The notes under the pieces: generated by a model | What the model was told of the DNA's origin: nothing | The model's database searches: none | Seen by the model: the letters and a program-made list of their open reading frames with translations, nothing else | In this document: piece by piece, positions 1 to 57,930 of the stretch | Position numbering within the stretch: position 1 is the stretch's first letter | Layout of the letters: every line of letters begins with the position of its first letter | Sequence record: KX397373.1 | Length of the DNA stretch: 64,000 bases | Strand: one strand, 5' to 3' | Translations under genes and position numbers: made by a program

Positions 1-510
1 ATGACCACAATCGCTTACGACGGGAAAACCCTCGCGGGTGATTCCCAAACGACACAAGGCGACATCCGCCTGTCGATGCACGCTGTGAAAATCTTCACCC
101 CCCAACCAGGTGAGTCCTGGGTGGTGAACGGGGAGAAAGCGGTTTCGTTTGGTGTGGCTGGATGTCTTCAAGGCAACAACGCACTGCGTGAAGCGCTGAA
201 CAGTTGCATGAAGGGCTACCAGGGTCTGACCGGAAGCACACGATTCCCAAAAGGGATTGTGATTAGTTATCTGGTTGTGACCGAGCATGGTAACGTCTAC
301 GCCGGTGGTCAATACGAGAACGACGAGATGCCTTGGCTGACCAAAGTCGCTGCACCCATTGCGGTGGGTAGCGGGGCAGAGTTCGCCATTGGTGCGATGG
401 CCGCAGGCGCATCCGCTGGTGACGCAGTTAGTATTGCGGCACGGTTCGATGTAAACACTGGTGGCGAGATTCGGGAGATTAGCCATGAAGCTCTTTCACG
501 TCACGCGTGA
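1..510 (+). CDS. HslV/proteasome-beta-like Ntn peptidase
   Basis: N-terminal (M)TTIAY with a Thr nucleophile, AGDSQTT, a Lys in AVKIF and GSGAEFA match the HslV T1/D17/K33/GSG pattern. Confidence 0.75.
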   Translation: MTTIAYDGKTLAGDSQTTQGDIRLSMHAVKIFTPQPGESWVVNGEKAVSFGVAGCLQGNNALREALNSCMKGYQGLTGSTRFPKGIVISYLVVTEHGNVYAGGQYENDEMPWLTKVAAPIAVGSGAEFAIGAMAAGASAGDAVSIAARFDVNTGGEIREISHEALSRHA

Positions 511-862
511 CTCGTATGTTTTATCTGGCGTGGTGGCAACCGCGATTATCTGCGCGGAATCCCACGAAGCAGCAGTCAGACATTGGCCTAAGGTCGACCG
601 GCAGATGCAGCTCGAGGTTGTTGAGTTAGCACCCGCACCAGAAAACCAGTTACCGGGTGTCGTGTTGACAACCCAGTTCTGGGGACAGGGTAAACCGGGT
701 TCATTGGCCTCGCGTCATCCGGAAGCAAAGATTTTCATCATCGAGTTTGAACGTACGGCAACGACCGCGCTTAAAGTCACGGACTGGAAAGACCACAGAG
801 GTCCCCATCCGGATTTTGAGGGTGGCGATATTGACCCGCAAACGTTAAGCCCGGCGTTTTAG
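485..862 (+). CDS. hypothetical protein, distant paralog of the next two small ORFs
   Basis: ATG at 485; MKLFHVTR...AIICAESHEAA resembles MNLYLL.R...IVV.A.TE.AAR. Confidence 0.6.
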   Translation: MKLFHVTRDSYVLSGVVATAIICAESHEAAVRHWPKVDRQMQLEVVELAPAPENQLPGVVLTTQFWGQGKPGSLASRHPEAKIFIIEFERTATTALKVTDWKDHRGPHPDFEGGDIDPQTLSPAF

Positions 863-868
863 TATTCT

Positions 869-944
869 AGGGGTATAGTTCAATTGGTAGAGCACCGGTC
901 TCCAAAACCGGGTGTTGGGGGTTCGAGTCCCTCTGCCCCTGCCA
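869..944 (+). tRNA. trnW: tRNA-Trp(CCA)
   Basis: 76-nt cloverleaf; acceptor AGGGGTA/TGCCCCT, anticodon arm CCGGT-CTCCAAA-ACCGG, TTCGAG T-loop, encoded CCA. Confidence 0.95.
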
Positions 945-1002
945 AAAACGAGTTCATGATACCTTAAGTGCCAATCCGGCTGGATATGCTTAGGAGACTA
1001 CC

Positions 1003-1227
1003 ATGAATTTATATTTGCTAAAAAGAACTGATAAGTATGGCCATGAGGAGTTTATTTCCATTGTCGTTTCCGCAGAAACGGAACAGGCGGCAAGAGAAAC
1101 TAAACCATCAACGGGCTATTGGTGCGATGGTGGGCACGGCGAAGAGAAAGTTACCTTGAGCTGCACCCATATCGGTATCACGGAGTTACCTCCAGGGGTA
1201 ATCCATGAATCTTATCAGAACCCCTAG
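1003..1227 (+). CDS. small hypothetical protein (tandem paralog 1)
   Basis: AGGAGA RBS; clear similarity to 1326..1568. Confidence 0.75.
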   Translation: MNLYLLKRTDKYGHEEFISIVVSAETEQAARETKPSTGYWCDGGHGEEKVTLSCTHIGITELPPGVIHESYQNP

Positions 1228-1325
1228 TGCAGTTAAAAGACTAGGTAACTAAATTTAGCCAGCAAGTTCAGTTCTGTCCAAAAGCCATATTTGCCCACCA
1301 CGGGAGTCGCTTATTGGAGAACACC

Positions 1326-1568
1326 ATGAATTTGTATTTGCTAGAACGAACCGATTCAGTCGGTTACGATGAGTTTGATTCCATAGTCGTTGCGACTCCT
1401 ACGGAGGATGCAGCGCGCGCAACTTTCGGAAAGGGTTGGGGATGGACTTGCTTCTGTGATGAGGACGATGCGTGTGACTGCGGAGACGGGGTAACCCTGA
1501 GCGTTAAACACATCGGCACTACTCATCTCGAGGAAGGTCTTATCCACTCTTCGTTCTGTGCAGGCTGA
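1326..1568 (+). CDS. small hypothetical protein (tandem paralog 2, Cys-rich insert)
   Basis: GGAGA RBS and ATG at 1326; shares MNLYLL.RTD..G..EF.SIVV and VTLS..HIG.T with the previous ORF. Confidence 0.75.
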   Translation: MNLYLLERTDSVGYDEFDSIVVATPTEDAARATFGKGWGWTCFCDEDDACDCGDGVTLSVKHIGTTHLEEGLIHSSFCAG

Positions 1569-1597
1569 ATACGGTGGGCTTCGGCCCACCACACTTT

Positions 1598-1673
1598 GGG
1601 GCAATGGCTCGAGCGGTTAGGCGACGAATTGCAAATTCGGATCAGGTCGGTTCAAGTCCGGCTTGCCCCTCCA
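1598..1673 (+). tRNA. trnC: tRNA-Cys(GCA)
   Basis: Acceptor GGGGCAA/TTGCCCC, U73, anticodon loop TTGCAAA, encoded CCA. Confidence 0.9.
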
Positions 1674-1708
1674 ATTTTTTTCTGAATTCCTGTAGGAACT
1701 CAAATCGG

Positions 1709-1876
1709 ATGAAAGCCAAACTTCGTAATTTTGCGTTGCTGGTTTTCCTGGTGTTGGCCGTATTGTTCTACCTGGCTAAGAATTTTGTGATGCTCGCCGT
1801 TGACGTCGCAATAATTCTGATGGTCTTGTGGGTGCTACGGTCACTCGCTAAACGGGCTTTCCGTCGGAAGGCTTAG
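1709..1876 (+). CDS. small (55 aa) two-helix membrane protein
   Basis: ATG at 1709; two hydrophobic stretches flanked by basic residues. Confidence 0.55.
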   Translation: MKAKLRNFALLVFLVLAVLFYLAKNFVMLAVDVAIILMVLWVLRSLAKRAFRRKA

Positions 1877-1939
1877 CGAACAGCGGAAACTCCGCTCTGT
1901 TGTATCAAACCCTGATATTCACCAGTAGGATAATAAAAC

Positions 1940-2770
1940 ATGAAAAAGCTTTTGGTAGGTTTGTTGGCAGTCCTGGCATTCTCCGCTCACGCTGCTGATG
2001 TTACCATTACGACGGGCCAGCAAGGTCTGACGTACAACGCCACGTACGGCGTGAATCTTGCCAGTGCTCTGAATGAGTTCGGCAACAAGTCCACTGTGGT
2101 ACCGTCGAAAGGTTCCCTGGACAACCTGGACAAAGTTGCTGCCGGTTCTGCGCAGATTGGTTTTACCCAGGCAGACGCTTTCCAGTTCTGGCGCTCACAG
2201 CATCCGAACGAAGCACAGAACGTAGACATCGTTGGCCAGCTGGGTGACGAGTGTGTCTTCGTGGCTGTCAAGAAAGAAGGTAAGGTTGGCGGTGAAGCCG
2301 ATCTGAAAGAAGGCATTAAGATTGCGGTCGGTGAACCCGACTCTGGTTCTTACGCCAGTTGGCAATACCTGCAAGGTTTGGTGAAGCAATACGCAAAAGC
2401 TGAAACCTACGCGAAAGGCGGTATCCGTTCTCTGTCCAAAGTGGCCACGGGTGAATACGACGCGTTCATGTGGGTAAGCGCACCGGGCAAGAATAACAAA
2501 TTCCTCGAAGCAGTTAACCAGGATAGCTCTGGTCTGAAACTCATCGACATGAACAACTGGAACGTCAACGATAAACTGCCTAACGGGCAAGCAGTCTACG
2601 AGAAGAAGTCTGCTAAAGTTGATAACTCTGCGTGGTTCGGTGGTGATGTGAAAGTGCCGTGCACCAAAACGTTGGTGGTTGCTAATACCGACGCCGGTGA
2701 CGAACTGCTGGAAGCCGTTTCTACTATCCTCCTCAAGAATGCTCCACGCATCATGGGGACGGGTAAGTAA
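1940..2770 (+). CDS. TAXI-family TRAP solute-binding protein with signal peptide
   Basis: Signal peptide MKKLLVGLLAVLAFSAHA; TITTG..G.TY, SKGSLDNL and IGFTQAD motifs; strong codon bias. Confidence 0.85.
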   Translation: MKKLLVGLLAVLAFSAHAADVTITTGQQGLTYNATYGVNLASALNEFGNKSTVVPSKGSLDNLDKVAAGSAQIGFTQADAFQFWRSQHPNEAQNVDIVGQLGDECVFVAVKKEGKVGGEADLKEGIKIAVGEPDSGSYASWQYLQGLVKQYAKAETYAKGGIRSLSKVATGEYDAFMWVSAPGKNNKFLEAVNQDSSGLKLIDMNNWNVNDKLPNGQAVYEKKSAKVDNSAWFGGDVKVPCTKTLVVANTDAGDELLEAVSTILLKNAPRIMGTGK

Positions 2771-3357
2771 GTGCTGACGTGTAAAGGGCACTGGCTGGGC
2801 TGATAACCCCGCCGGGACGGTTTCATCTGAGGGGTTGGGTGAAGTGAAGAAACGTGGCACACCAATAAGTCCACGTTAACCGGATTGCATAAAGCACTAC
2901 CTGCGGGTAGGCAATCCTGCCGTCTAACATTATTCGGTGATTAAACATGGAAGAGTTGTTCAGAGCGTTTCTGTACCGAATGGGTACCTGGTTGAAAGAC
3001 CTCAAGCTCTGGAAGCTCGATTGCTATTGGTTATCAGGATGTGGGACTGAACGCCATAAACCTGTTTTAGGACGAGAGTCCTCAACCCAGGCGAAGTCCG
3101 TTACGGACGAAGGTCAAGCACCGGCCCATTAAGCCGACTCGCTGACATAGGCAACCTTCACCCCACAATCTGAATGTAACTGATGGGATTGAGTTCCCAG
3201 TGTGAAAGAGTAGCAGTGTGCTACTGAGTTCCTCCCTGGGACTGCTGAGCAGCGAGGGAATAGGGCCAAGAAGAAAGTAAGTAGGGTTGGTGCTTGGAGG
3301 CGCTAAGACCGGGGGATACCCTGGCTCAGAAGAAGAAGTCCATCAACCTCACTTAAT
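2771..3357 (+). ncRNA. candidate large structured ncRNA (~590 nt)
   Basis: No credible ORF. Hairpins include 2851-57/2871-77, 2882-88/2911-17, 3069-73/3078-82 with a GAGA loop and 3209-15/3219-25; two crossing 8-bp long-range helices. Strand inferred from the adjacent tRNAs. Confidence 0.6.
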
Positions 3358-3433
3358 GCGAGTATAGCTCAGCTGGTAGAGCTTCTGGTTCCCAACCAGA
3401 CGGTCGTGAGTTCGAATCTCATTGCTCGCTCCA
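3358..3433 (+). tRNA. trnG: tRNA-Gly(CCC)
   Basis: Anticodon arm TCTGG-TTCCCAA-CCAGA, U73, CCA. Confidence 0.92.
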
Positions 3434-3542
3434 ACAAAATCAATGACTTATAGCGATTTCCCCATTTCGCTACAAGACAACCTAAGTATATGTAAAACAA
3501 CCAAGACGTGTGCGAATTCGAAGTTGAGTTCTCAGACGTATT

Positions 3543-3628
3543 GGCGCGGTACTCAAGTGGTCAACGAGAGCAGACTGTAAATCTGTTGCCTTCGGGCTTC
3601 GTAGGTTCAAATCCTTCCCTCGCCACCA
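3543..3628 (+). tRNA. trnY: tRNA-Tyr(GTA)
   Basis: Long variable arm, loop CTGTAAA, CCA; single mismatches in the acceptor and T stems. Confidence 0.88.
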
Positions 3629-3634
3629 ATATTT

Positions 3635-3709
3635 GTTCCTGTCGTCTAGTGGTAAGGACACCTGGTTTTCAACCAGGCAACCGGAGTTCAATTCTCCGCA
3701 GGAACGCCA
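3635..3709 (+). tRNA. trnE: tRNA-Glu(TTC)
   Basis: Anticodon arm CCTGG-TTTTCAA-CCAGG, G73, CCA. Confidence 0.92.
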
Positions 3710-3714
3710 AACAA

Positions 3715-3861
3715 TGACACTGACCCTCGCCGCCATTGAGCAGCTTAGAGGTCTGGCAGCCAATAAAGGCATCCGTAAGTAACCGTAGCCTTCGGGCGTA
3801 GATGGTGAAAGCCGCCAAGTGCAGCCTTAGAACTCCGTGGGATTCGGAGGAGTGTCACCCA
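3715..3861 (+). ncRNA. 147-nt tRNA-like RNA with acceptor stem, T-like arm and CCA
   Basis: TGACACT (3715-21) pairs with AGTGTCA (3851-57) followed by C-CCA; stem CTCCG/CGGAG with a 7-nt loop just upstream; no D or anticodon arm. Confidence 0.55.
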
Positions 3862-3865
3862 TTTT

Positions 3866-3943
3866 AGGATTGTAGCTCAGTTGGTCTAGAGTGCCGCCCT
3901 GTCACGGCGGAGGTCGCGGGTTCGAGCCCCGTCAGTCCTGCCA
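3866..3943 (+). tRNA. trnD: tRNA-Asp(GTC)
   Basis: Anticodon arm CCGCC-CTGTCAC-GGCGG, G73, CCA. Confidence 0.95.
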
Positions 3944-3952
3944 TTTTTAAAT

Positions 3953-4028
3953 TGCGTCTTAGCTCAGTTGGTAGAGCGCACCCCTGATAAGGGTGAGGTC
4001 ACTGGTTCAAGTCCAGTAGATGCAACCA
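3953..4028 (+). tRNA. trnI: tRNA-Ile(GAT)
   Basis: Anticodon arm CACCC-CTGATAA-GGGTG, CCA. Confidence 0.95.
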
Positions 4029-4034
4029 GTATTC

Positions 4035-4110
4035 GGTTCTGTAGCTTAGCTGGTAGAGCACGCCACTCATAATGGCGCGGTCGTTGGTTCGAATCCAGCC
4101 AGAACCACCA
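4035..4110 (+). tRNA. tRNA with CAT anticodon (elongator Met or Ile2)
   Basis: Anticodon arm CGCCA-CTCATAA-TGGCG, CCA; Met versus lysidine-Ile cannot be resolved by eye. Confidence 0.9.
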
Positions 4111-4117
4111 TTTCAAC

Positions 4118-4195
4118 GGTGTATGTAGTTCAGCTGGTTAGAATACTGGCTTGTGACGTCAGTGGTCGAGAGTTCGAGTCTCTCCATACACCCCA
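4118..4195 (+). tRNA. trnH: tRNA-His(GTG)
   Basis: Encoded G-1:C73 pair, loop TTGTGAC, CCA. Confidence 0.93.
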
Positions 4196-4200
4196 ATTCT

Positions 4201-4290
4201 GGAGAATTGTCCGAGAGGCTTAAAGAGCTCCCCTGCTAAGGGAGTGGTGGCGGAAGCTGCCCGTGTGTTCGAATCACACATTCTCCGCCA
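4201..4290 (+). tRNA. trnS: tRNA-Ser(GCT)
   Basis: 90 nt with long variable arm; anticodon arm CTCCC-CTGCTAA-GGGAG; G73, CCA. Confidence 0.93.
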
Positions 4291-4296
4291 AACAAT

Positions 4297-4416
4297 AGTC
4301 GCCTAGCTCAAGATTAGAGCACACCTTACGACCAATACTGACCAACACGCACCGCGGTGCAATAATGGCGGTGGCGTGATGTGCGGTTACCGGTTCAAGT
4401 CCGGTGGTGACTTCCC
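4297..4416 (+). ncRNA. tRNA-like RNA with a 52-nt segment in place of the anticodon loop
   Basis: Intact acceptor AGTCGCC/GGTGACT, D stem GCTC/GAGC and T arm ACCGG-TTCAAGT-CCGGT; ends TCCC, not CCA. Confidence 0.65.
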
Positions 4417-4422
4417 TATAAT

Positions 4423-4487
4423 GGCTACTCCCGGTCGGTCTGGGGTCGTCTGTAAAGACGAGGATGGTTCAAATCCGTCAGTGGCAA
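4423..4487 (+). ncRNA. minimal or degenerate tRNA-like element (GTA in a 6-nt loop)
   Basis: GCTACT/AGTGGC stem, TCGTC-TGTAAA-GACGA arm, 1-nt variable region, GATGG-TTCAAAT-CCGTC T arm; no CCA. Confidence 0.45.
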
Positions 4488-4488
4488 G

Positions 4489-4561
4489 AGCGATGCTGTT
4501 AAGATGGTTAACACCCGACTCATAATCGGATATTCGCAGGTTCGATTCCTGTCATCGTTCG
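4489..4561 (+). tRNA. atypical tRNA(CAT) without encoded CCA
   Basis: AGCGATG/CATCGTT acceptor, GTTA/TAAC D stem, loop CTCATAA, canonical T arm; C at position 8 and 3' end CGCCC. Confidence 0.6.
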
Positions 4562-4570
4562 CCCTATTTT

Positions 4571-4647
4571 GGTTCCATAGCTCAGTTGGTTAGAGCGGCT
4601 GCCTGTTAAGCAGTAGGTCCCTGGTTCGAGTCCAGGTGGTACCGCCA
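4571..4647 (+). tRNA. trnN: tRNA-Asn(GTT)
   Basis: Loop CTGTTAA, G73, CCA; one U:U mismatch in the acceptor stem. Confidence 0.92.
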
Positions 4648-4652
4648 CATTT

Positions 4653-4940
4653 GTGTTGCCCTAGTCCCGAAGACGTTCCGGAAAAACCTATTCATGGTCG
4701 GGGGTAACACGAACACATTCGCTGTCTTGCATCCTTTACGTTAGTCTCCAGACGCGTTTCGGGGTGCGGGACGGTGAACCCCTTTCTGGTTGCATTTCCA
4801 TTTTCATGAACCCTGCCTGGTGTGTTGGTGTTTATGTAACCAGAATCAATTAGCCCATGCCGATGTGCTATTGTCTTCCGAACGCGACCCGCGTTCTGCC
4901 CAGGAAGACGCCTGCTGTAGTTTCAATGCCAGTACCAGGG
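4653..4940 (+). ncRNA. candidate structured ncRNA (~290 nt) at the end of the tRNA array
   Basis: 9-bp helix 4653-61/4702-10, 12-bp helix 4784-95/4834-45, nested helices 4873-79/4903-09; ORFs here lack an RBS. Confidence 0.45.
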
Positions 4941-4942
4941 AA

Positions 4943-4985
4943 GCACCTACTCTTCGGAGTAGGTGCAATCTCTTTTTATTTTTTT
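4943..4985 (+). terminator. intrinsic terminator closing the RNA island
   Basis: GCACCTACTC-TTCG-GAGTAGGTGC followed by a T-rich tract. Confidence 0.85.
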
Positions 4986-5082
4986 GCATTCAAAAATATC
5001 ACAGATATATTTTACCTATTGGAGATGAGAAAACCTTATCTCCAAGCGACCCATTCGACTATAGCCTTAAAGGAGTTATACC

Positions 5083-6060
5083 ATGCCACGTAATTATCGC
5101 CCTACTGCTGCTTCTGCCATCGATGGTTTAGTGGCTGCGCATTACAGTCGTGAAGAAGCAACCATGATTCGCCCGTTCCTGCCTTTGCACTTCGATAACT
5201 TCGTTGCATTACCGAGTGCGAACTATGAATTCTGGAGTGCGTACCGTGCGGTACAAGATGCCCTGACGTACGACCGTCACAAGTTCCGTTTCTATTTCTG
5301 GCGTGATGAAGAAAAGAGCCACATCCCAAACAGCCCGTACGTCAAGATGTACTACGAATCCCCCACGTTCAAAGCAGAGTTCAGCACCATTGAATTCATC
5401 CGTCACTTTGGCCGTGCTCTGTTTACTGACCATGGCTCAGATGGCCTGGGACGTAAGCTCAATTACGTTAACGGTGGATTACGGATTAAGACCCGTATCC
5501 TGAGAGAGTTGTTTGATGAGATTGGTAAAGAGACTGATAACCCAGCACCGTGGTTCAACGGGTATCGTCGTCCAACCATCTCGGTACTGATTCCACCCCA
5601 GCCAACTGTGTTCACTCCACGCGAAGTATTAATCGCCTGGCGTGCCGGTGAGCGCGTTCATCGTACGTTACACGGTGGTCGCTTTGACCGTAAGCAACAC
5701 TGGATTAACCCAATGCAAGATGGTTGGGATATTGCCCGCTACTTAGACTTGCAGGCATACCGTGAGTCAAAAGGTTTCATCTCTTCACAAGAGTTCCACC
5801 GTCTGCGTTCGGATGTCATCACGGTATTAACGGCCACGGATATTTTCCCGGCCTACACCATGTACCACCGTTCACTGATTCTTAACAACCATATCTTCGG
5901 CGAGTCTATCGACCCTACTGGGTATCAACGATTAGATTTGCCAGCAGTTGACAACGTTCATCCCATCGGGTACCTCACCCCGAAGAACAATTACAGCGTA
6001 ACCATGCCGAGCGATGTGTTCAGCATGTTTACACCGGATGAATGGCACGCCGTATTGTAG
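5083..6060 (+). CDS. hypothetical protein (325 aa)
   Basis: AAGGAG RBS, long ORF, terminator downstream. Confidence 0.85.
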   Translation: MPRNYRPTAASAIDGLVAAHYSREEATMIRPFLPLHFDNFVALPSANYEFWSAYRAVQDALTYDRHKFRFYFWRDEEKSHIPNSPYVKMYYESPTFKAEFSTIEFIRHFGRALFTDHGSDGLGRKLNYVNGGLRIKTRILRELFDEIGKETDNPAPWFNGYRRPTISVLIPPQPTVFTPREVLIAWRAGERVHRTLHGGRFDRKQHWINPMQDGWDIARYLDLQAYRESKGFISSQEFHRLRSDVITVLTATDIFPAYTMYHRSLILNNHIFGESIDPTGYQRLDLPAVDNVHPIGYLTPKNNYSVTMPSDVFSMFTPDEWHAVL

Positions 6061-6076
6061 GTGAAGTCGATGCTTA

Positions 6077-6103
6077 GGGGTCCTTAGTGGCCCCATTTTT
6101 TTT
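6077..6103 (+). terminator. intrinsic terminator
   Basis: GGGGTCC-TTAGT-GGCCCC followed by a T run. Confidence 0.7.
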
Positions 6104-6144
6104 GATTTTTACGGTTCCACTATTAGTTATAGGAGGTAGTCGCC

Positions 6145-6552
6145 GTGAAACATACAACTCATCAATATCTGGAATTCTATTCCGCGTTAGAACAAGGCAG
6201 TATCCCGACTTCCATTAATCCAGGAAGTGAATGGGAGCAACATCTCTTCTGCGATTTAATCCCGTTACTGACAATGCACCCGCATTACCAGAAATGGTTT
6301 GAGTCGTTAGAGAAAGTCCACGCTGTTGGATTCCGCCGTGGGGTTGATTCCCCGGTGGTCGATACAGGCATCAACATTACCCGCACTGAGTGCACCTCAC
6401 CCACCGAGAAGTTCATTAACTCATTCATGAAAGAAATGGCCAATGCTTTAATCAGTAGAAGCCATCCCTATGAGGAACTGTTCGCGGTGTTGCTGGATGG
6501 GATTTATACATTCCAACTCAAACATTATAAAACCCTTTCCACACTACATTAA
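6145..6552 (+). CDS. hypothetical protein
   Basis: AGGAGG RBS with GTG start. Confidence 0.7.
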   Translation: MKHTTHQYLEFYSALEQGSIPTSINPGSEWEQHLFCDLIPLLTMHPHYQKWFESLEKVHAVGFRRGVDSPVVDTGINITRTECTSPTEKFINSFMKEMANALISRSHPYEELFAVLLDGIYTFQLKHYKTLSTLH

Positions 6553-6620
6553 CCTTTTTTACGGCACCTACCATTTCTTTTGGGAGTCTGTGCTGTAATA
6601 GATTCCAAAGGAGACGTAAC

Positions 6621-7010
6621 ATGAAGACGAAACTGCGTCCGATGGACGTGATTATGGCTCATCCGGATACCCTCAAGAACATTAAGCCACGCAGTGAACT
6701 TGATAGTGCCCTTATCGAGATGACACTGTGGGGTTTCACATTTCACCCGGATGAACACCACAACACGAAGCATTTGGATGTGGCTGCTGATGCAGAGATT
6801 GACTGGTCGGTTAAAGAGGGTTTCGAAGATGTAGAAGCCTACGTGACCAGTTCCACGCAACCAGCCCGTTTCCCGGTTGCTGGTGAAGCTGAGAACATTA
6901 TCTCTTTGCGCCGCTTGCTTAACGCGCAACCCGAAGTTGTCCGCGAGGGAGATGCGTGGGCGGCTGGCACAGCGTGCCATTTGAAGAACATGCTTACCCA
7001 GGCCGGTTAA
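6621..7010 (+). CDS. hypothetical protein
   Basis: AAGGAG RBS with ATG start. Confidence 0.8.
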   Translation: MKTKLRPMDVIMAHPDTLKNIKPRSELDSALIEMTLWGFTFHPDEHHNTKHLDVAADAEIDWSVKEGFEDVEAYVTSSTQPARFPVAGEAENIISLRRLLNAQPEVVREGDAWAAGTACHLKNMLTQAG

Positions 7011-7020
7011 AATAGAAGTA

Positions 7021-7057
7021 CCCCTACTCAATCGAGTAGGGGCTGTTTCTTTTTTTT
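7021..7057. terminator. terminator between convergent genes
   Basis: CCCCTACTC-AATC-GAGTAGGGG with a T tract 3' and an A-rich 5' flank. Confidence 0.75.
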
Positions 7058-7060
7058 TCT

Positions 7061-7873
7061 TTACGCTTTGAAACGTCCGGCGTTAAGATAGTTGTAACGG
7101 TTACCGATGTCATCGTTGTGGATGAGCGCACGTTGCATCCGCGGTAAGTTGTCGTTGAACATCTCACCGGAATCTTCATACTTCTCAATGAAGTTACGGA
7201 AGGCACCGAACTCCATCCCGTTTTCCAGTTTCCCGGCATCCATGTCAAACATCATCTTGTTGTAGATGTACTGTCGGGTAGCGTACAACCCTAAGTCAGC
7301 GACAACCGGATAGAACGGTGGTTTGATTTCGTTCAGGTCATCAGACAACATGAACTTCGCCATAATCTTCGTGGCGTAGACAAACATGCCTGGGTCTTTG
7401 ATACGAATCACGTTCGGGCCTAATACCTTACATTCCGGCGAACCGATACGGGGCATGGCGGACTGACTGTCAACGACCTGCTGGGTGGAAGACATTACCC
7501 CGGTCGATGCACCATCAAGGTATGAACCCGCGGGCGGTAGCGTGTACGCTTGTCCCGCGACCGGCGTAACCGCCAGGTGTGCATCAATAAGCGGACGACC
7601 ACCCGTTTTGATATCGTCGATGTAATAGACACGACTGTAGTAGTCTTGCGTGTCGTTTTCATACGCCACCCCCTGTAAGTCAATCTCGGTATACTGACCC
7701 ATCCGTGAGACTTCGGGAATCAAATACTCCTTAAAGACTTTTTCGCTGATCTCGTTATCCAGGGAAGAGGCGATCCCGAGTAGGCGAAGGTTTTCTGGTG
7801 CAAATGCAGCCCGTAGAATGGGCTCTGGGATCTCGCGGCGGATACGCCGGAGACAATAATCGATAACACTCAT
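7061..7873 (-). CDS. conserved hypothetical protein, probable virion component
   Basis: Start at 7873 (MSVIDY) with AGGAG RBS; TATG 33 nt upstream, resembling a phiKZ late promoter; virion role is inference. Confidence 0.75.
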   Translation of the reverse strand: MSVIDYCLRRIRREIPEPILRAAFAPENLRLLGIASSLDNEISEKVFKEYLIPEVSRMGQYTEIDLQGVAYENDTQDYYSRVYYIDDIKTGGRPLIDAHLAVTPVAGQAYTLPPAGSYLDGASTGVMSSTQQVVDSQSAMPRIGSPECKVLGPNVIRIKDPGMFVYATKIMAKFMLSDDLNEIKPPFYPVVADLGLYATRQYIYNKMMFDMDAGKLENGMEFGAFRNFIEKYEDSGEMFNDNLPRMQRALIHNDDIGNRYNYLNAGRFKA

Positions 7874-7995
7874 TCTAGAGCTCCTGTAAAGCACGTACGT
7901 CGGTTCATAGCATCGGGTAATATGATTGGCTAACGCCAATAAAAAATACGCGTAGCGCCCTTTCTGTGCGCACCATACTCGAAGATATTTTGCAT

Positions 7996-8012
7996 AGATA
8001 TTATCTTCGTGA
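7996..8012 (+). promoter_or_regulatory. phage promoter-like motif AGATATTATC-N3-GTGA
   Basis: Recurs upstream of several operon starts. Confidence 0.6.
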
Positions 8013-57887: not shown

Positions 57888-57913
57888 GTCCCGGATTATA
57901 AATTGTTTCAGAT

Positions 57914-57930
57914 ATATATTACCTAGGTGA
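57914..57930 (+). promoter_or_regulatory. promoter-like motif containing TATATTAC
   Basis: ATATATTACC-TAG-GTGA; the core matches the phiKZ early promoter element. Confidence 0.65.

Follow-up and report, generated by a model that had tools for sequence, protein, structure and literature searches.

Conserved structured RNAs and a small protein gene among the tRNAs of an SPN3US-like jumbo phage

Phage transfer RNA (tRNA) clusters are usually annotated as tRNAs separated by meaningless spacers. We analyze one such cluster, the tRNA island at positions 2771-4966 of a 64,000-nucleotide (nt) stretch of sequence record KX397373.1, hereafter the window. The bases of the island are those of Erwinia phage vB_EamM_Stratton (KX397373.1; 100% identity at matching coordinates); Stratton and its kin are SPN3US-like jumbo phages of about 240 kb. 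The island lies at the left end of these genomes and contains tRNAs, structured RNAs, and one small gene. By alignment, 5 predicted non-tRNA elements, termed S1a, S1cd, S3, S5, and S6a, carry compensatory pair changes across 4 genera.

An earlier note on this DNA, made from the letters alone, had described RNA genes crowded onto a single strand between a TAXI gene and one strong terminator, and this outline holds. Every RNA gene of the island lies on the plus strand in tight spacing, with 5-9 nt between neighboring tRNAs where these are adjacent. In Stratton, the gene directly upstream is gp8 (window 1940-2770), which is TAXI-like (PF16868). Each non-tRNA element is closed by a terminal stem, and all elements of the island are single-copy within the window. 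The features are listed below with their supporting evidence; fold z-scores express the stability of a segment relative to dinucleotide shuffles, and A3, A4, A6, and A7 are covariation alignments. Lengths are in nt, base pairs (bp), or amino acids (aa).

2791-2946, plus strand: S1a, structured leader (profile search, covariation)
2947-3132, plus strand: small protein gene, 61 aa (frame kept in 24 of 24 distinct loci)
3115-3351, plus strand: S1cd, structured RNA (covariation; present in 24 of 24 distinct loci)
3358-3433, plus strand: tRNA-Gly (CCC) (ARAGORN; Rfam tRNA model, 67.3 bits)
3434-3542, plus strand: S2, spacer with 2 hairpins (fold z -3.3; sequence found in Erskinevirus only)
3543-3628, plus strand: tRNA-Tyr (GTA) (ARAGORN, Rfam)
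3635-3709, plus strand: tRNA-Glu (TTC) (ARAGORN, Rfam)
3715-3857, plus strand: S3, multi-branch RNA of about 145 nt (covariation on A6)
3866-3943, plus strand: tRNA-Asp (GTC) (ARAGORN, Rfam)
3953-4028, plus strand: tRNA-Ile (GAT) (ARAGORN, Rfam)
4035-4110, plus strand: tRNA-Met (CAT) (ARAGORN, Rfam)
4119-4195, plus strand: tRNA-His (GTG) (ARAGORN, Rfam)
4201-4290, plus strand: tRNA-Ser (GCT) (ARAGORN, Rfam)
4297-4412, plus strand: S4, tRNA-shaped RNA (fold z -3.05)
4424-4485, plus strand: S5, tRNA mimic (fold z -3.7; compensatory changes)
4488-4563, plus strand: atypical tRNA-CAU (ARAGORN; Rfam, 44 bits; CC encoded, A76 not)
4571-4647, plus strand: tRNA-Asn (GTT) (ARAGORN, Rfam)
4650-4713, plus strand: S6a, hairpin domain (covariation on A3)
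4718-4940, plus strand: rest of S6, an 18-bp hairpin (4718-4778) and a multi-branch domain (fold z of whole S6, -6.7)
4943-4986, plus strand: intrinsic terminator (hairpin 4943-4966; 10-bp stem, UUCG loop, T-run)

The region is matched by phage phiEaH2 at 99.9% and by Asesino, also of the genus Erskinevirus, at 88%. Beyond these genomes, we compared the syntenic regions of Wellingtonvirus, Machinavirus, Seoulvirus (SPN3US and its kin), and uncultured relatives from IMG/VR and metagenomes; 24 distinct loci of relatives stand behind the main conservation counts. Covariation in A7 (S1a, 18 sequences), A4 (S1cd), A6 (S3), and A3 (S6a) was set against slid pairing partners and 500 shuffles, and the S5 and tRNA-CAU families were judged by compensatory changes. 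All alignments come from a single phage clade, and kinship inflates some counts; the slide controls and the presence of several independent pair types lessen this inflation and are no substitute for R-scape.

The structured leader S1a occupies the interval between the stop codon of the TAXI-like gene and the start of the small open reading frame (ORF). It comprises 3 hairpins with conserved loops (H1, 2791-2815; H2, 2852-2876; H3, 2882-2917), followed by a conserved tail that leads into the start codon. A profile search recovers S1a in every clade member, SPN3US included. In A7, 18 of its 26 pairs are changed on both sides, and 98.9% of positions remain paired; covariation scores 0.74, compared with no more than 0.11 for slid partners, and none of 500 shuffles comes up to these values. 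S1a matches no cis-regulatory (riboswitch or leader) model in Rfam.

The small gene that follows is the point at which the earlier description of the island as RNA only, with no credible protein gene, fails. ORF 2947-3132 is unannotated in Stratton and has counterparts in gp9 of Asesino, Machina, and ChrisDB. All relatives keep this frame open, from an ATG to one invariant TAA, over 55-69 codons. Among 18 distinct sequences, the coding frame holds no stop; the alternative frames hold 44 and 40, and neither is open in any sequence. The relatives share a protein core of roughly R.W.(L/F)..(Y/V)W(L/F)(S/T)G.G..R, and the least variable codon position is position 2. Conservation in the first half of the ORF is at the level of protein but not of DNA; between Stratton and SPN3US, blastn fails to align this part, although the protein motif persists. 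PHROG 26199 (function unknown) matches all 4 diverged versions that were tried, with E values from 1e-49 to 0.025. A tblastn search with the small protein against all phage records returns close relatives only. When every open frame of the island is searched in this way, similarity confined to protein is seen for 2947-3132 alone; the searches with the other frames are uninformative because DNA conservation gives matches in all frames. AlphaFold predicts a single helix (residues 2-29; predicted local distance difference test score about 80) followed by a disordered tail, and the model offers no fold worth a structure search. From this conservation, we infer that ORF 2947-3132 is a translated protein gene.

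The gene runs directly into S1cd, an RNA of about 230-235 nt whose 5' start lies inside the last codons of the ORF. The first hairpin of S1cd, which is conserved, carries the stop codon (3130-3132) in its loop. In this hairpin, a synonymous proline codon change, CCG to CCA, is compensated just 3' of the stop, so protein and RNA both appear to be constrained there. Within S1cd, several hairpins are accompanied by a variable hairpin that can be exchanged and, at the 3' side, by a long bent hairpin (S1d, 3284-3351) whose purine-rich internal loop is conserved. In A4, 13 of 40 pairs are changed on both sides, with 97.3% paired; covariation is 0.267, against at most 0.066 with slid partners, and none of 500 shuffles reaches it. 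By folding energy, S1 as a whole scores -3.1 and S1d a weaker -1.7. A long-range pairing between the small ORF and the S1c part is possible, but its support is mixed and it is not kept in Machinavirus; we make no claim for it.

The variable hairpin of S1cd (window 3220-3283; L002 3180-3232 and, for SPN3US, L004 2589-2639) exists in at least 3 interchangeable versions. It differs between Stratton and Asesino, which belong to one genus, and between 2 otherwise near-identical metagenomic relatives. In the version found in SPN3US and Asesino, the loop is almost the same as the conserved core of an Rfam family, the L17 ribosomal-protein leader, with a match that stays below threshold (RF03132; 22 bits, E 2.2); this version is absent from Stratton.

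The earlier note had counted the first of 2 large structured segments as one RNA. That the segment is structured is borne out by fold z-scores and covariation. Since a conserved ORF lies within it, the segment is better described as a leader, a small gene, and an RNA. The trio forms a unit of its own, present throughout the clade, in which the leader probably controls the small protein or associates with it.

Two further elements stand out by covariation. S3 is closed by a stem of 6-7 bp (UGACAC/GUGUCA), with a hairpin resembling a T arm (5 bp, 7-nt loop) beside its 3' strand. It is present in Erskinevirus, Wellingtonvirus, and SNUABM29, and partially in SPAsTU and Machina. Its folding energy is weak (z -1.4); in A6, 8 of 27 pairs are changed on both sides, 95.8% are paired, and covariation is 0.274, against at most 0.104 with slid partners and with none of 500 shuffles as high. 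The 5' end of S3 lies just 3' of a tRNA in most phages that carry it, and the element is found intact beside different tRNAs in different phages. A 22-codon ORF inside S3 was considered as a gene and ruled out, since it is frameshifted in Asesino. S6a, with a closing stem of about 13 bp immediately 3' of tRNA-Asn, occurs in 13 loci from 3 genera, SPN3US included. It always starts right after tRNA-Asn or, in SPN3US types, after tRNA-CAU. In A3, 6 of its 16 pairs are changed on both sides (97.4% paired), a result matched by none of 500 shuffles.

The earlier note had counted 4 noncanonical tRNA-shaped elements; non-tRNA folds of this shape are real, and S4 and S5, in the second half of the island, are of this kind. 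S5 folds into a cloverleaf: the acceptor, D, and T arms are all present, but a GUAA tetraloop closes the 6-bp "anticodon" stem. It encodes no CCA, ending in ...GGC-AA 2 nt before the next tRNA. Among the 5 distinct sequences of the family, the acceptor and T stems show compensatory changes; the distal loop of the homologues measures 4-8 nt, and a clear canonical 7-nt anticodon loop is found in none. In every case, 2 nt separate the element from the conserved tRNA-CAU downstream. The same slot is occupied in SPN3US by a tRNA-like RNA with a 3-nt loop (37 bits with the Rfam tRNA model), in Machina by a 94-nt variant, and in Asesino by S4. The true cloverleaf connectivity of S5 suggests descent from a tRNA.

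The minimum free energy fold of S4 shows U8, D and T arms, and an acceptor stem of 7 bp; the anticodon arm is replaced by about 60 nt that include a 10-bp hairpin. CCA is not encoded, and UCCC comes next. S4 is seen only in Erskinevirus, at about 97.5% identity, and this near-identity precludes a covariation test. Neither S4 nor S5 matches RF00005 at E values up to 10 (4285-4495), and neither is called by ARAGORN at default stringency, even with introns allowed. S4 and S5 thus fail the tests of a decoding tRNA, yet retain the tRNA body.

In SPN3US (L004 2150-3460), about 1.3 kb lacks any annotated plus-strand gene and carries the leader, the small ORF, S1cd, the tRNA-like RNA, a weak tRNA-CAU, and S6a. 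The anticodon-less tRNA-like RNA is annotated there as tRNA-OTHER, and a minus-strand coding sequence (CDS), SPN3US_0003, is annotated across the tRNA-like pair; this CDS is probably spurious. A gene similar in size to the TAXI-like gene, without a Pfam match, lies between S6a and the conserved terminator (L004 3457-4278). Its placement, compared with that of the TAXI-like gene upstream of the island in Stratton, indicates that gene order around the RNA core varies by genus.

The same 10 tRNAs within 2771-4966 are called by ARAGORN and by the Rfam tRNA model; all are canonical or near-canonical, and together they constitute an ordinary phage tRNA array. The 9 canonical tRNAs that had been counted from the letters are confirmed, with CCA encoded in each; tRNA-CAU, atypical in its 44-bit score and missing A76, is the tenth and was probably counted as noncanonical. 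The tRNA-CAU family is kept throughout the clade; both partners have changed in 12 of its 22 pairs, and the family is unusual in all parts of the clade. Homologues with a long extra arm of about 25 nt occur in ChrisDB, SNUABM_4, and one IMG/VR relative (L006, L013, and L016), and in Machina position 33 of the anticodon loop is C, not U. ARAGORN runs with introns, lowered stringency, or transfer-messenger RNA (tmRNA) and mitochondrial modes add only implausible calls, at low stringency, and neither ARAGORN (default) nor Rfam finds a tmRNA in the island. Two further tRNAs, Trp and Cys, lie upstream on the same strand among small hypothetical genes (869-944 and 1598-1673); in the SPN3US-type loci examined, ARAGORN detects tRNA-Trp and no other tRNA.

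Annotation of the region can be corrected at 4 points: one missed small gene, one missed tRNA, one mislabeled tRNA, and one probably spurious CDS. GenBank KX397373 omits tRNA-CAU (4488-4563), enters S4 as tRNA-Ile(aat), and names the tRNA at 3865-3944 tRNA-His(gtg), which both ARAGORN and Rfam identify as tRNA-Asp (GTC). The annotated gp19 (4790-5131, TTG start) is probably no gene: it crosses the terminator hairpin and T-run, and its frame is broken by indels in Asesino, where 2 different ORFs are annotated. ORF 4857-5093 was rejected as a gene on the same grounds, crossing the terminator and being broken by indels in Asesino. In SPN3US, tblastn matches to these 2 ORFs (4790-5131 and 4857-5093) are split over 2 frames.

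The terminator is kept in other genera (Seoulvirus), where 4 of its pairs are changed on both sides. In the remainder of S6, the final 100 nt or so are conserved in Seoulvirus; relative to Asesino, changes between G-U and G-C pairs and one double change fit the fold. Just beyond the terminator and upstream of gp20, an AT-rich motif, CAGATATAT(T/A)TTACC, lies at 5002-5016 and recurs once, at 57909-57923. It may be a promoter element; it is not enriched in the window, where 2 copies are too few for statistics.

How well are the spacers kept relative to the tRNAs? Stratton and Asesino share 75-97% identity in the spacers, apart from S5, which is absent from Asesino, and 79% at the end of the TAXI-like gene; in the tRNAs, identity ranges from 30% to 100%, the low values arising because several tRNAs have been replaced. 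In SPN3US-type genomes, ARAGORN detects no tRNA in the island, and what is kept is S1a, the small gene, S1cd, the anticodon-less tRNA-like RNA, tRNA-CAU, and S6a. This persistence in tRNA-poor genomes marks those parts as a conserved core and the tRNAs as a variable accessory. The earlier note had proposed a synteny comparison, with conserved tRNAs among unconserved spacers as the outcome that would count against it; the spacers prove to be conserved, covarying, and at least as well kept as the tRNAs. Several of them outlive nearly all tRNAs in relatives. Spacer conservation and survival in tRNA-poor relatives bear out the view that the island is more than a tRNA supplement.

None of the non-tRNA elements matches a family in Rfam 15, at E values up to 1 over positions 1-8000 and up to 10 on parts; permissive thresholds on each part return only tRNAs and noise. 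A blastn search of the spacers against 50,697 phage records finds SPN3US-like phages only. When IMG/VR, metagenomes, and 185,579 bacterial genomes were scanned with sequence patterns, true matches came only from relatives within this clade, with genomes of about 240 kb; 8 matches in bacterial genomes, and metagenome matches without full-length nhmmer support, look like chance. Exact-pattern scans are blind to distant relatives, so this restriction to the clade is provisional.

What might such an island do? We lean toward a co-transcribed operon of tRNAs and noncoding RNAs (ncRNAs), cut by the tRNA-processing enzymes of the host in the manner of phage T4, with the leader, ORF, and RNA as a separate unit. 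Transcription would yield one or a few long precursors ending at the 4943-4966 terminator. The host would cut these at the tRNAs and tRNA-like structures, with RNase P acting at 5' ends, and RNase E/Z, exonucleases, and the CCA-adding enzyme handling 3' ends. Cutting would free the tRNAs and the intervening RNAs as discrete stable species, a fate suited to the long closing stems that would clamp the ends of the latter. The anticodon-less tRNA-shaped elements may serve as processing punctuation, as nondecoding tRNA mimics, or as both. Our case for processing draws on the T4 analogy and on the consistent abutment of elements to tRNA ends.

Several observations weigh against this picture. No promoter is identified for the island, where a sigma-70 scan performs at chance level, and a literature search found no transcriptome of an SPN3US-like phage from which co-transcription and discrete stable products could be read. 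S2 holds a conserved TATATGT motif (3487-3493) that could be an internal promoter of the type used by phage RNA polymerase; phiKZ-type late promoters contain TATG. In Machina, a protein gene, not a tRNA, comes next after S1cd, so S1cd may be independent of tRNA-type processing. Structure in S2, S4, and the middle of S6, which occur only in near-identical Erskinevirus genomes, is backed by folding energy and a few consistent substitutions. Finally, the small protein has no Pfam match, PHROG 26199 carries no assigned function, and the RNAs likewise have none. As to the motif itself, T(T/A)TATGT precedes tRNA-Tyr by 45-100 nt in almost every clade member (sites in L002-L021) and is not enriched within the window. 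A further conserved element, GUCGG...CUGGCACC, comes after the motif in Machinavirus, SNUABM29, and one IMG/VR relative but is missing from Stratton.

A less likely account, which nonetheless deserves some weight, is that the non-tRNA elements act in cis only. S1a would be a regulatory 5' untranslated region (UTR) of the riboswitch or protein-binding type and S1cd a structured 3' UTR; S3, S5, and S6a would be leader, spacer, and trailer structures that order pre-tRNA processing and protect the transcript, with no role as free RNAs. Much of the geometry suits this account: S1a ends at a weak ribosome-binding region just 5' of the ATG, the ORF stop lies in the first S1cd hairpin loop with the synonymous proline change compensated past it, S6a is directly 3' of the last tRNA, and S5 is directly 5' of tRNA-CAU. 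However, the conservation, multi-helix architecture, and invariant unpaired nucleotides go beyond the needs of simple protective hairpins; the elements are kept in SPN3US-type genomes, which have almost nothing to process; and S3 moves as an intact unit among different tRNA neighbors. Functions in trans, as decoy, scaffold, or regulator, are possible for the island RNAs. One elaboration, which we regard as rather unlikely, is that the leader, 61-aa protein, and 230-nt RNA form an undescribed ribonucleoprotein or a translation-coupled switch and that, together with S5-slot mimics binding host tRNA-handling or defense proteins, they make up an RNA-based takeover or counter-defense module in which the tRNAs are optional. 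A narrower proposal, to which we assign slightly lower confidence still, casts the S5 slot and S4 as decoys or inhibitors that bind host enzymes or defense nucleases reading the tRNA body and so shield the real tRNAs. Compensatory change keeps the arms of the tRNA body while the anticodon loop is free to vary, from 3 to 8 nt, or is replaced; CCA is not encoded, unlike in the 9 canonical tRNAs; and phage tRNAs have been proposed as a counter to tRNA-targeting defenses (PMC10264068). Yet the best-known defenses of this kind cut the anticodon loop, which S4 and S5 lack, and the family is small, at 5 distinct S5 sequences.

Two further readings fare worse. The span 2771-3357 could be one large ornate RNA of the ROOL/GOLLD type, possibly multimeric, in which the ORF is incidental. 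Its 587 nt, its place beside a phage tRNA island, the strong structure in both flanks, and the possible pairing between ORF and S1c are in keeping with this idea, which is nevertheless very improbable: there is no ROOL/GOLLD match even at E values up to 10, the long-range pairing is lost in Machinavirus, and the open frame in 24 of 24 loci, with conservation of protein rather than DNA in the first half of the ORF, speaks for a gene. To the view that the spacers are neutral relics, namely decayed tRNA genes and recombination scars, we give almost no credence. The great variation in tRNA content among relatives, the tRNA-like relics in SPN3US types, and the swapping of the S1cd variable hairpin between close relatives would fit such a history, but the alignments already contradict it by their covariation counts: each of the 2 largest elements has 13-18 compensated pairs, S3 and S6a have 6-8, and pairing holds at 95.8-99% over 4 genera. 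Conservation also equals or exceeds that of the tRNAs and neighboring coding sequence.

Structured ncRNAs co-encoded with phage tRNA arrays are already known as a general kind. Nearest to the island RNAs by function and context are the stable RNAs of phage T4 and the ROOL/GOLLD RNAs. In T4, RNase P acts with further host enzymes to release RNA species I and II from shared precursors, and CCA has to be added to some of the tRNAs. The tRNA region of T4 contains these "RNA species I and II" among its tRNAs (PMC2330249). Stratton resembles T4 in that a lytic phage has its tRNAs clustered on one strand together with small non-tRNA RNAs of unknown function, which are stable in T4 (PMC2330249) and probably so in Stratton. 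It differs in that the spacers have no sequence similarity to species I/II (rnaC/rnaD) and that the elements are more numerous and larger, are joined by a small protein gene, and include a core that persists without tRNAs. ROOL (RF03087) and GOLLD (RF01998) are large structured RNAs of phages and prophages, of unknown function and "often near tRNA islands," a context that Stratton fits; its 587-nt segment, however, matches neither model and is interrupted by a conserved protein gene. Self-assembly into a multimeric cage is a further mark of ROOL and GOLLD. The MALAT1 mascRNA, bacterial YrlA, and skipping-rope-type mimics have a tRNA-like body without decoding and are recognized by tRNA-processing enzymes or mimic the L shape. 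S4 and S5 are similar in body, but match neither the mascRNA nor the YrlA model in Rfam, and S5 retains cloverleaf connectivity. Arrays that supplement codons or counter defenses offer a fit for the tRNAs of Stratton, but not for the conserved non-tRNA elements or their persistence in tRNA-poor relatives. What appears to be undescribed are these RNA families, the unit of leader, small gene, and RNA, and the conserved anticodon-less tRNA slot.

The spacers of this island thus hold at least 5 covariation-backed RNA families that lie outside Rfam 15 and outlast the tRNAs in tRNA-poor relatives. They provide small, genetically tractable candidates for roles of phage tRNA islands beyond codon supply: an anticodon-less mimic, a unit of leader, small protein, and RNA, and several stable-looking RNAs.

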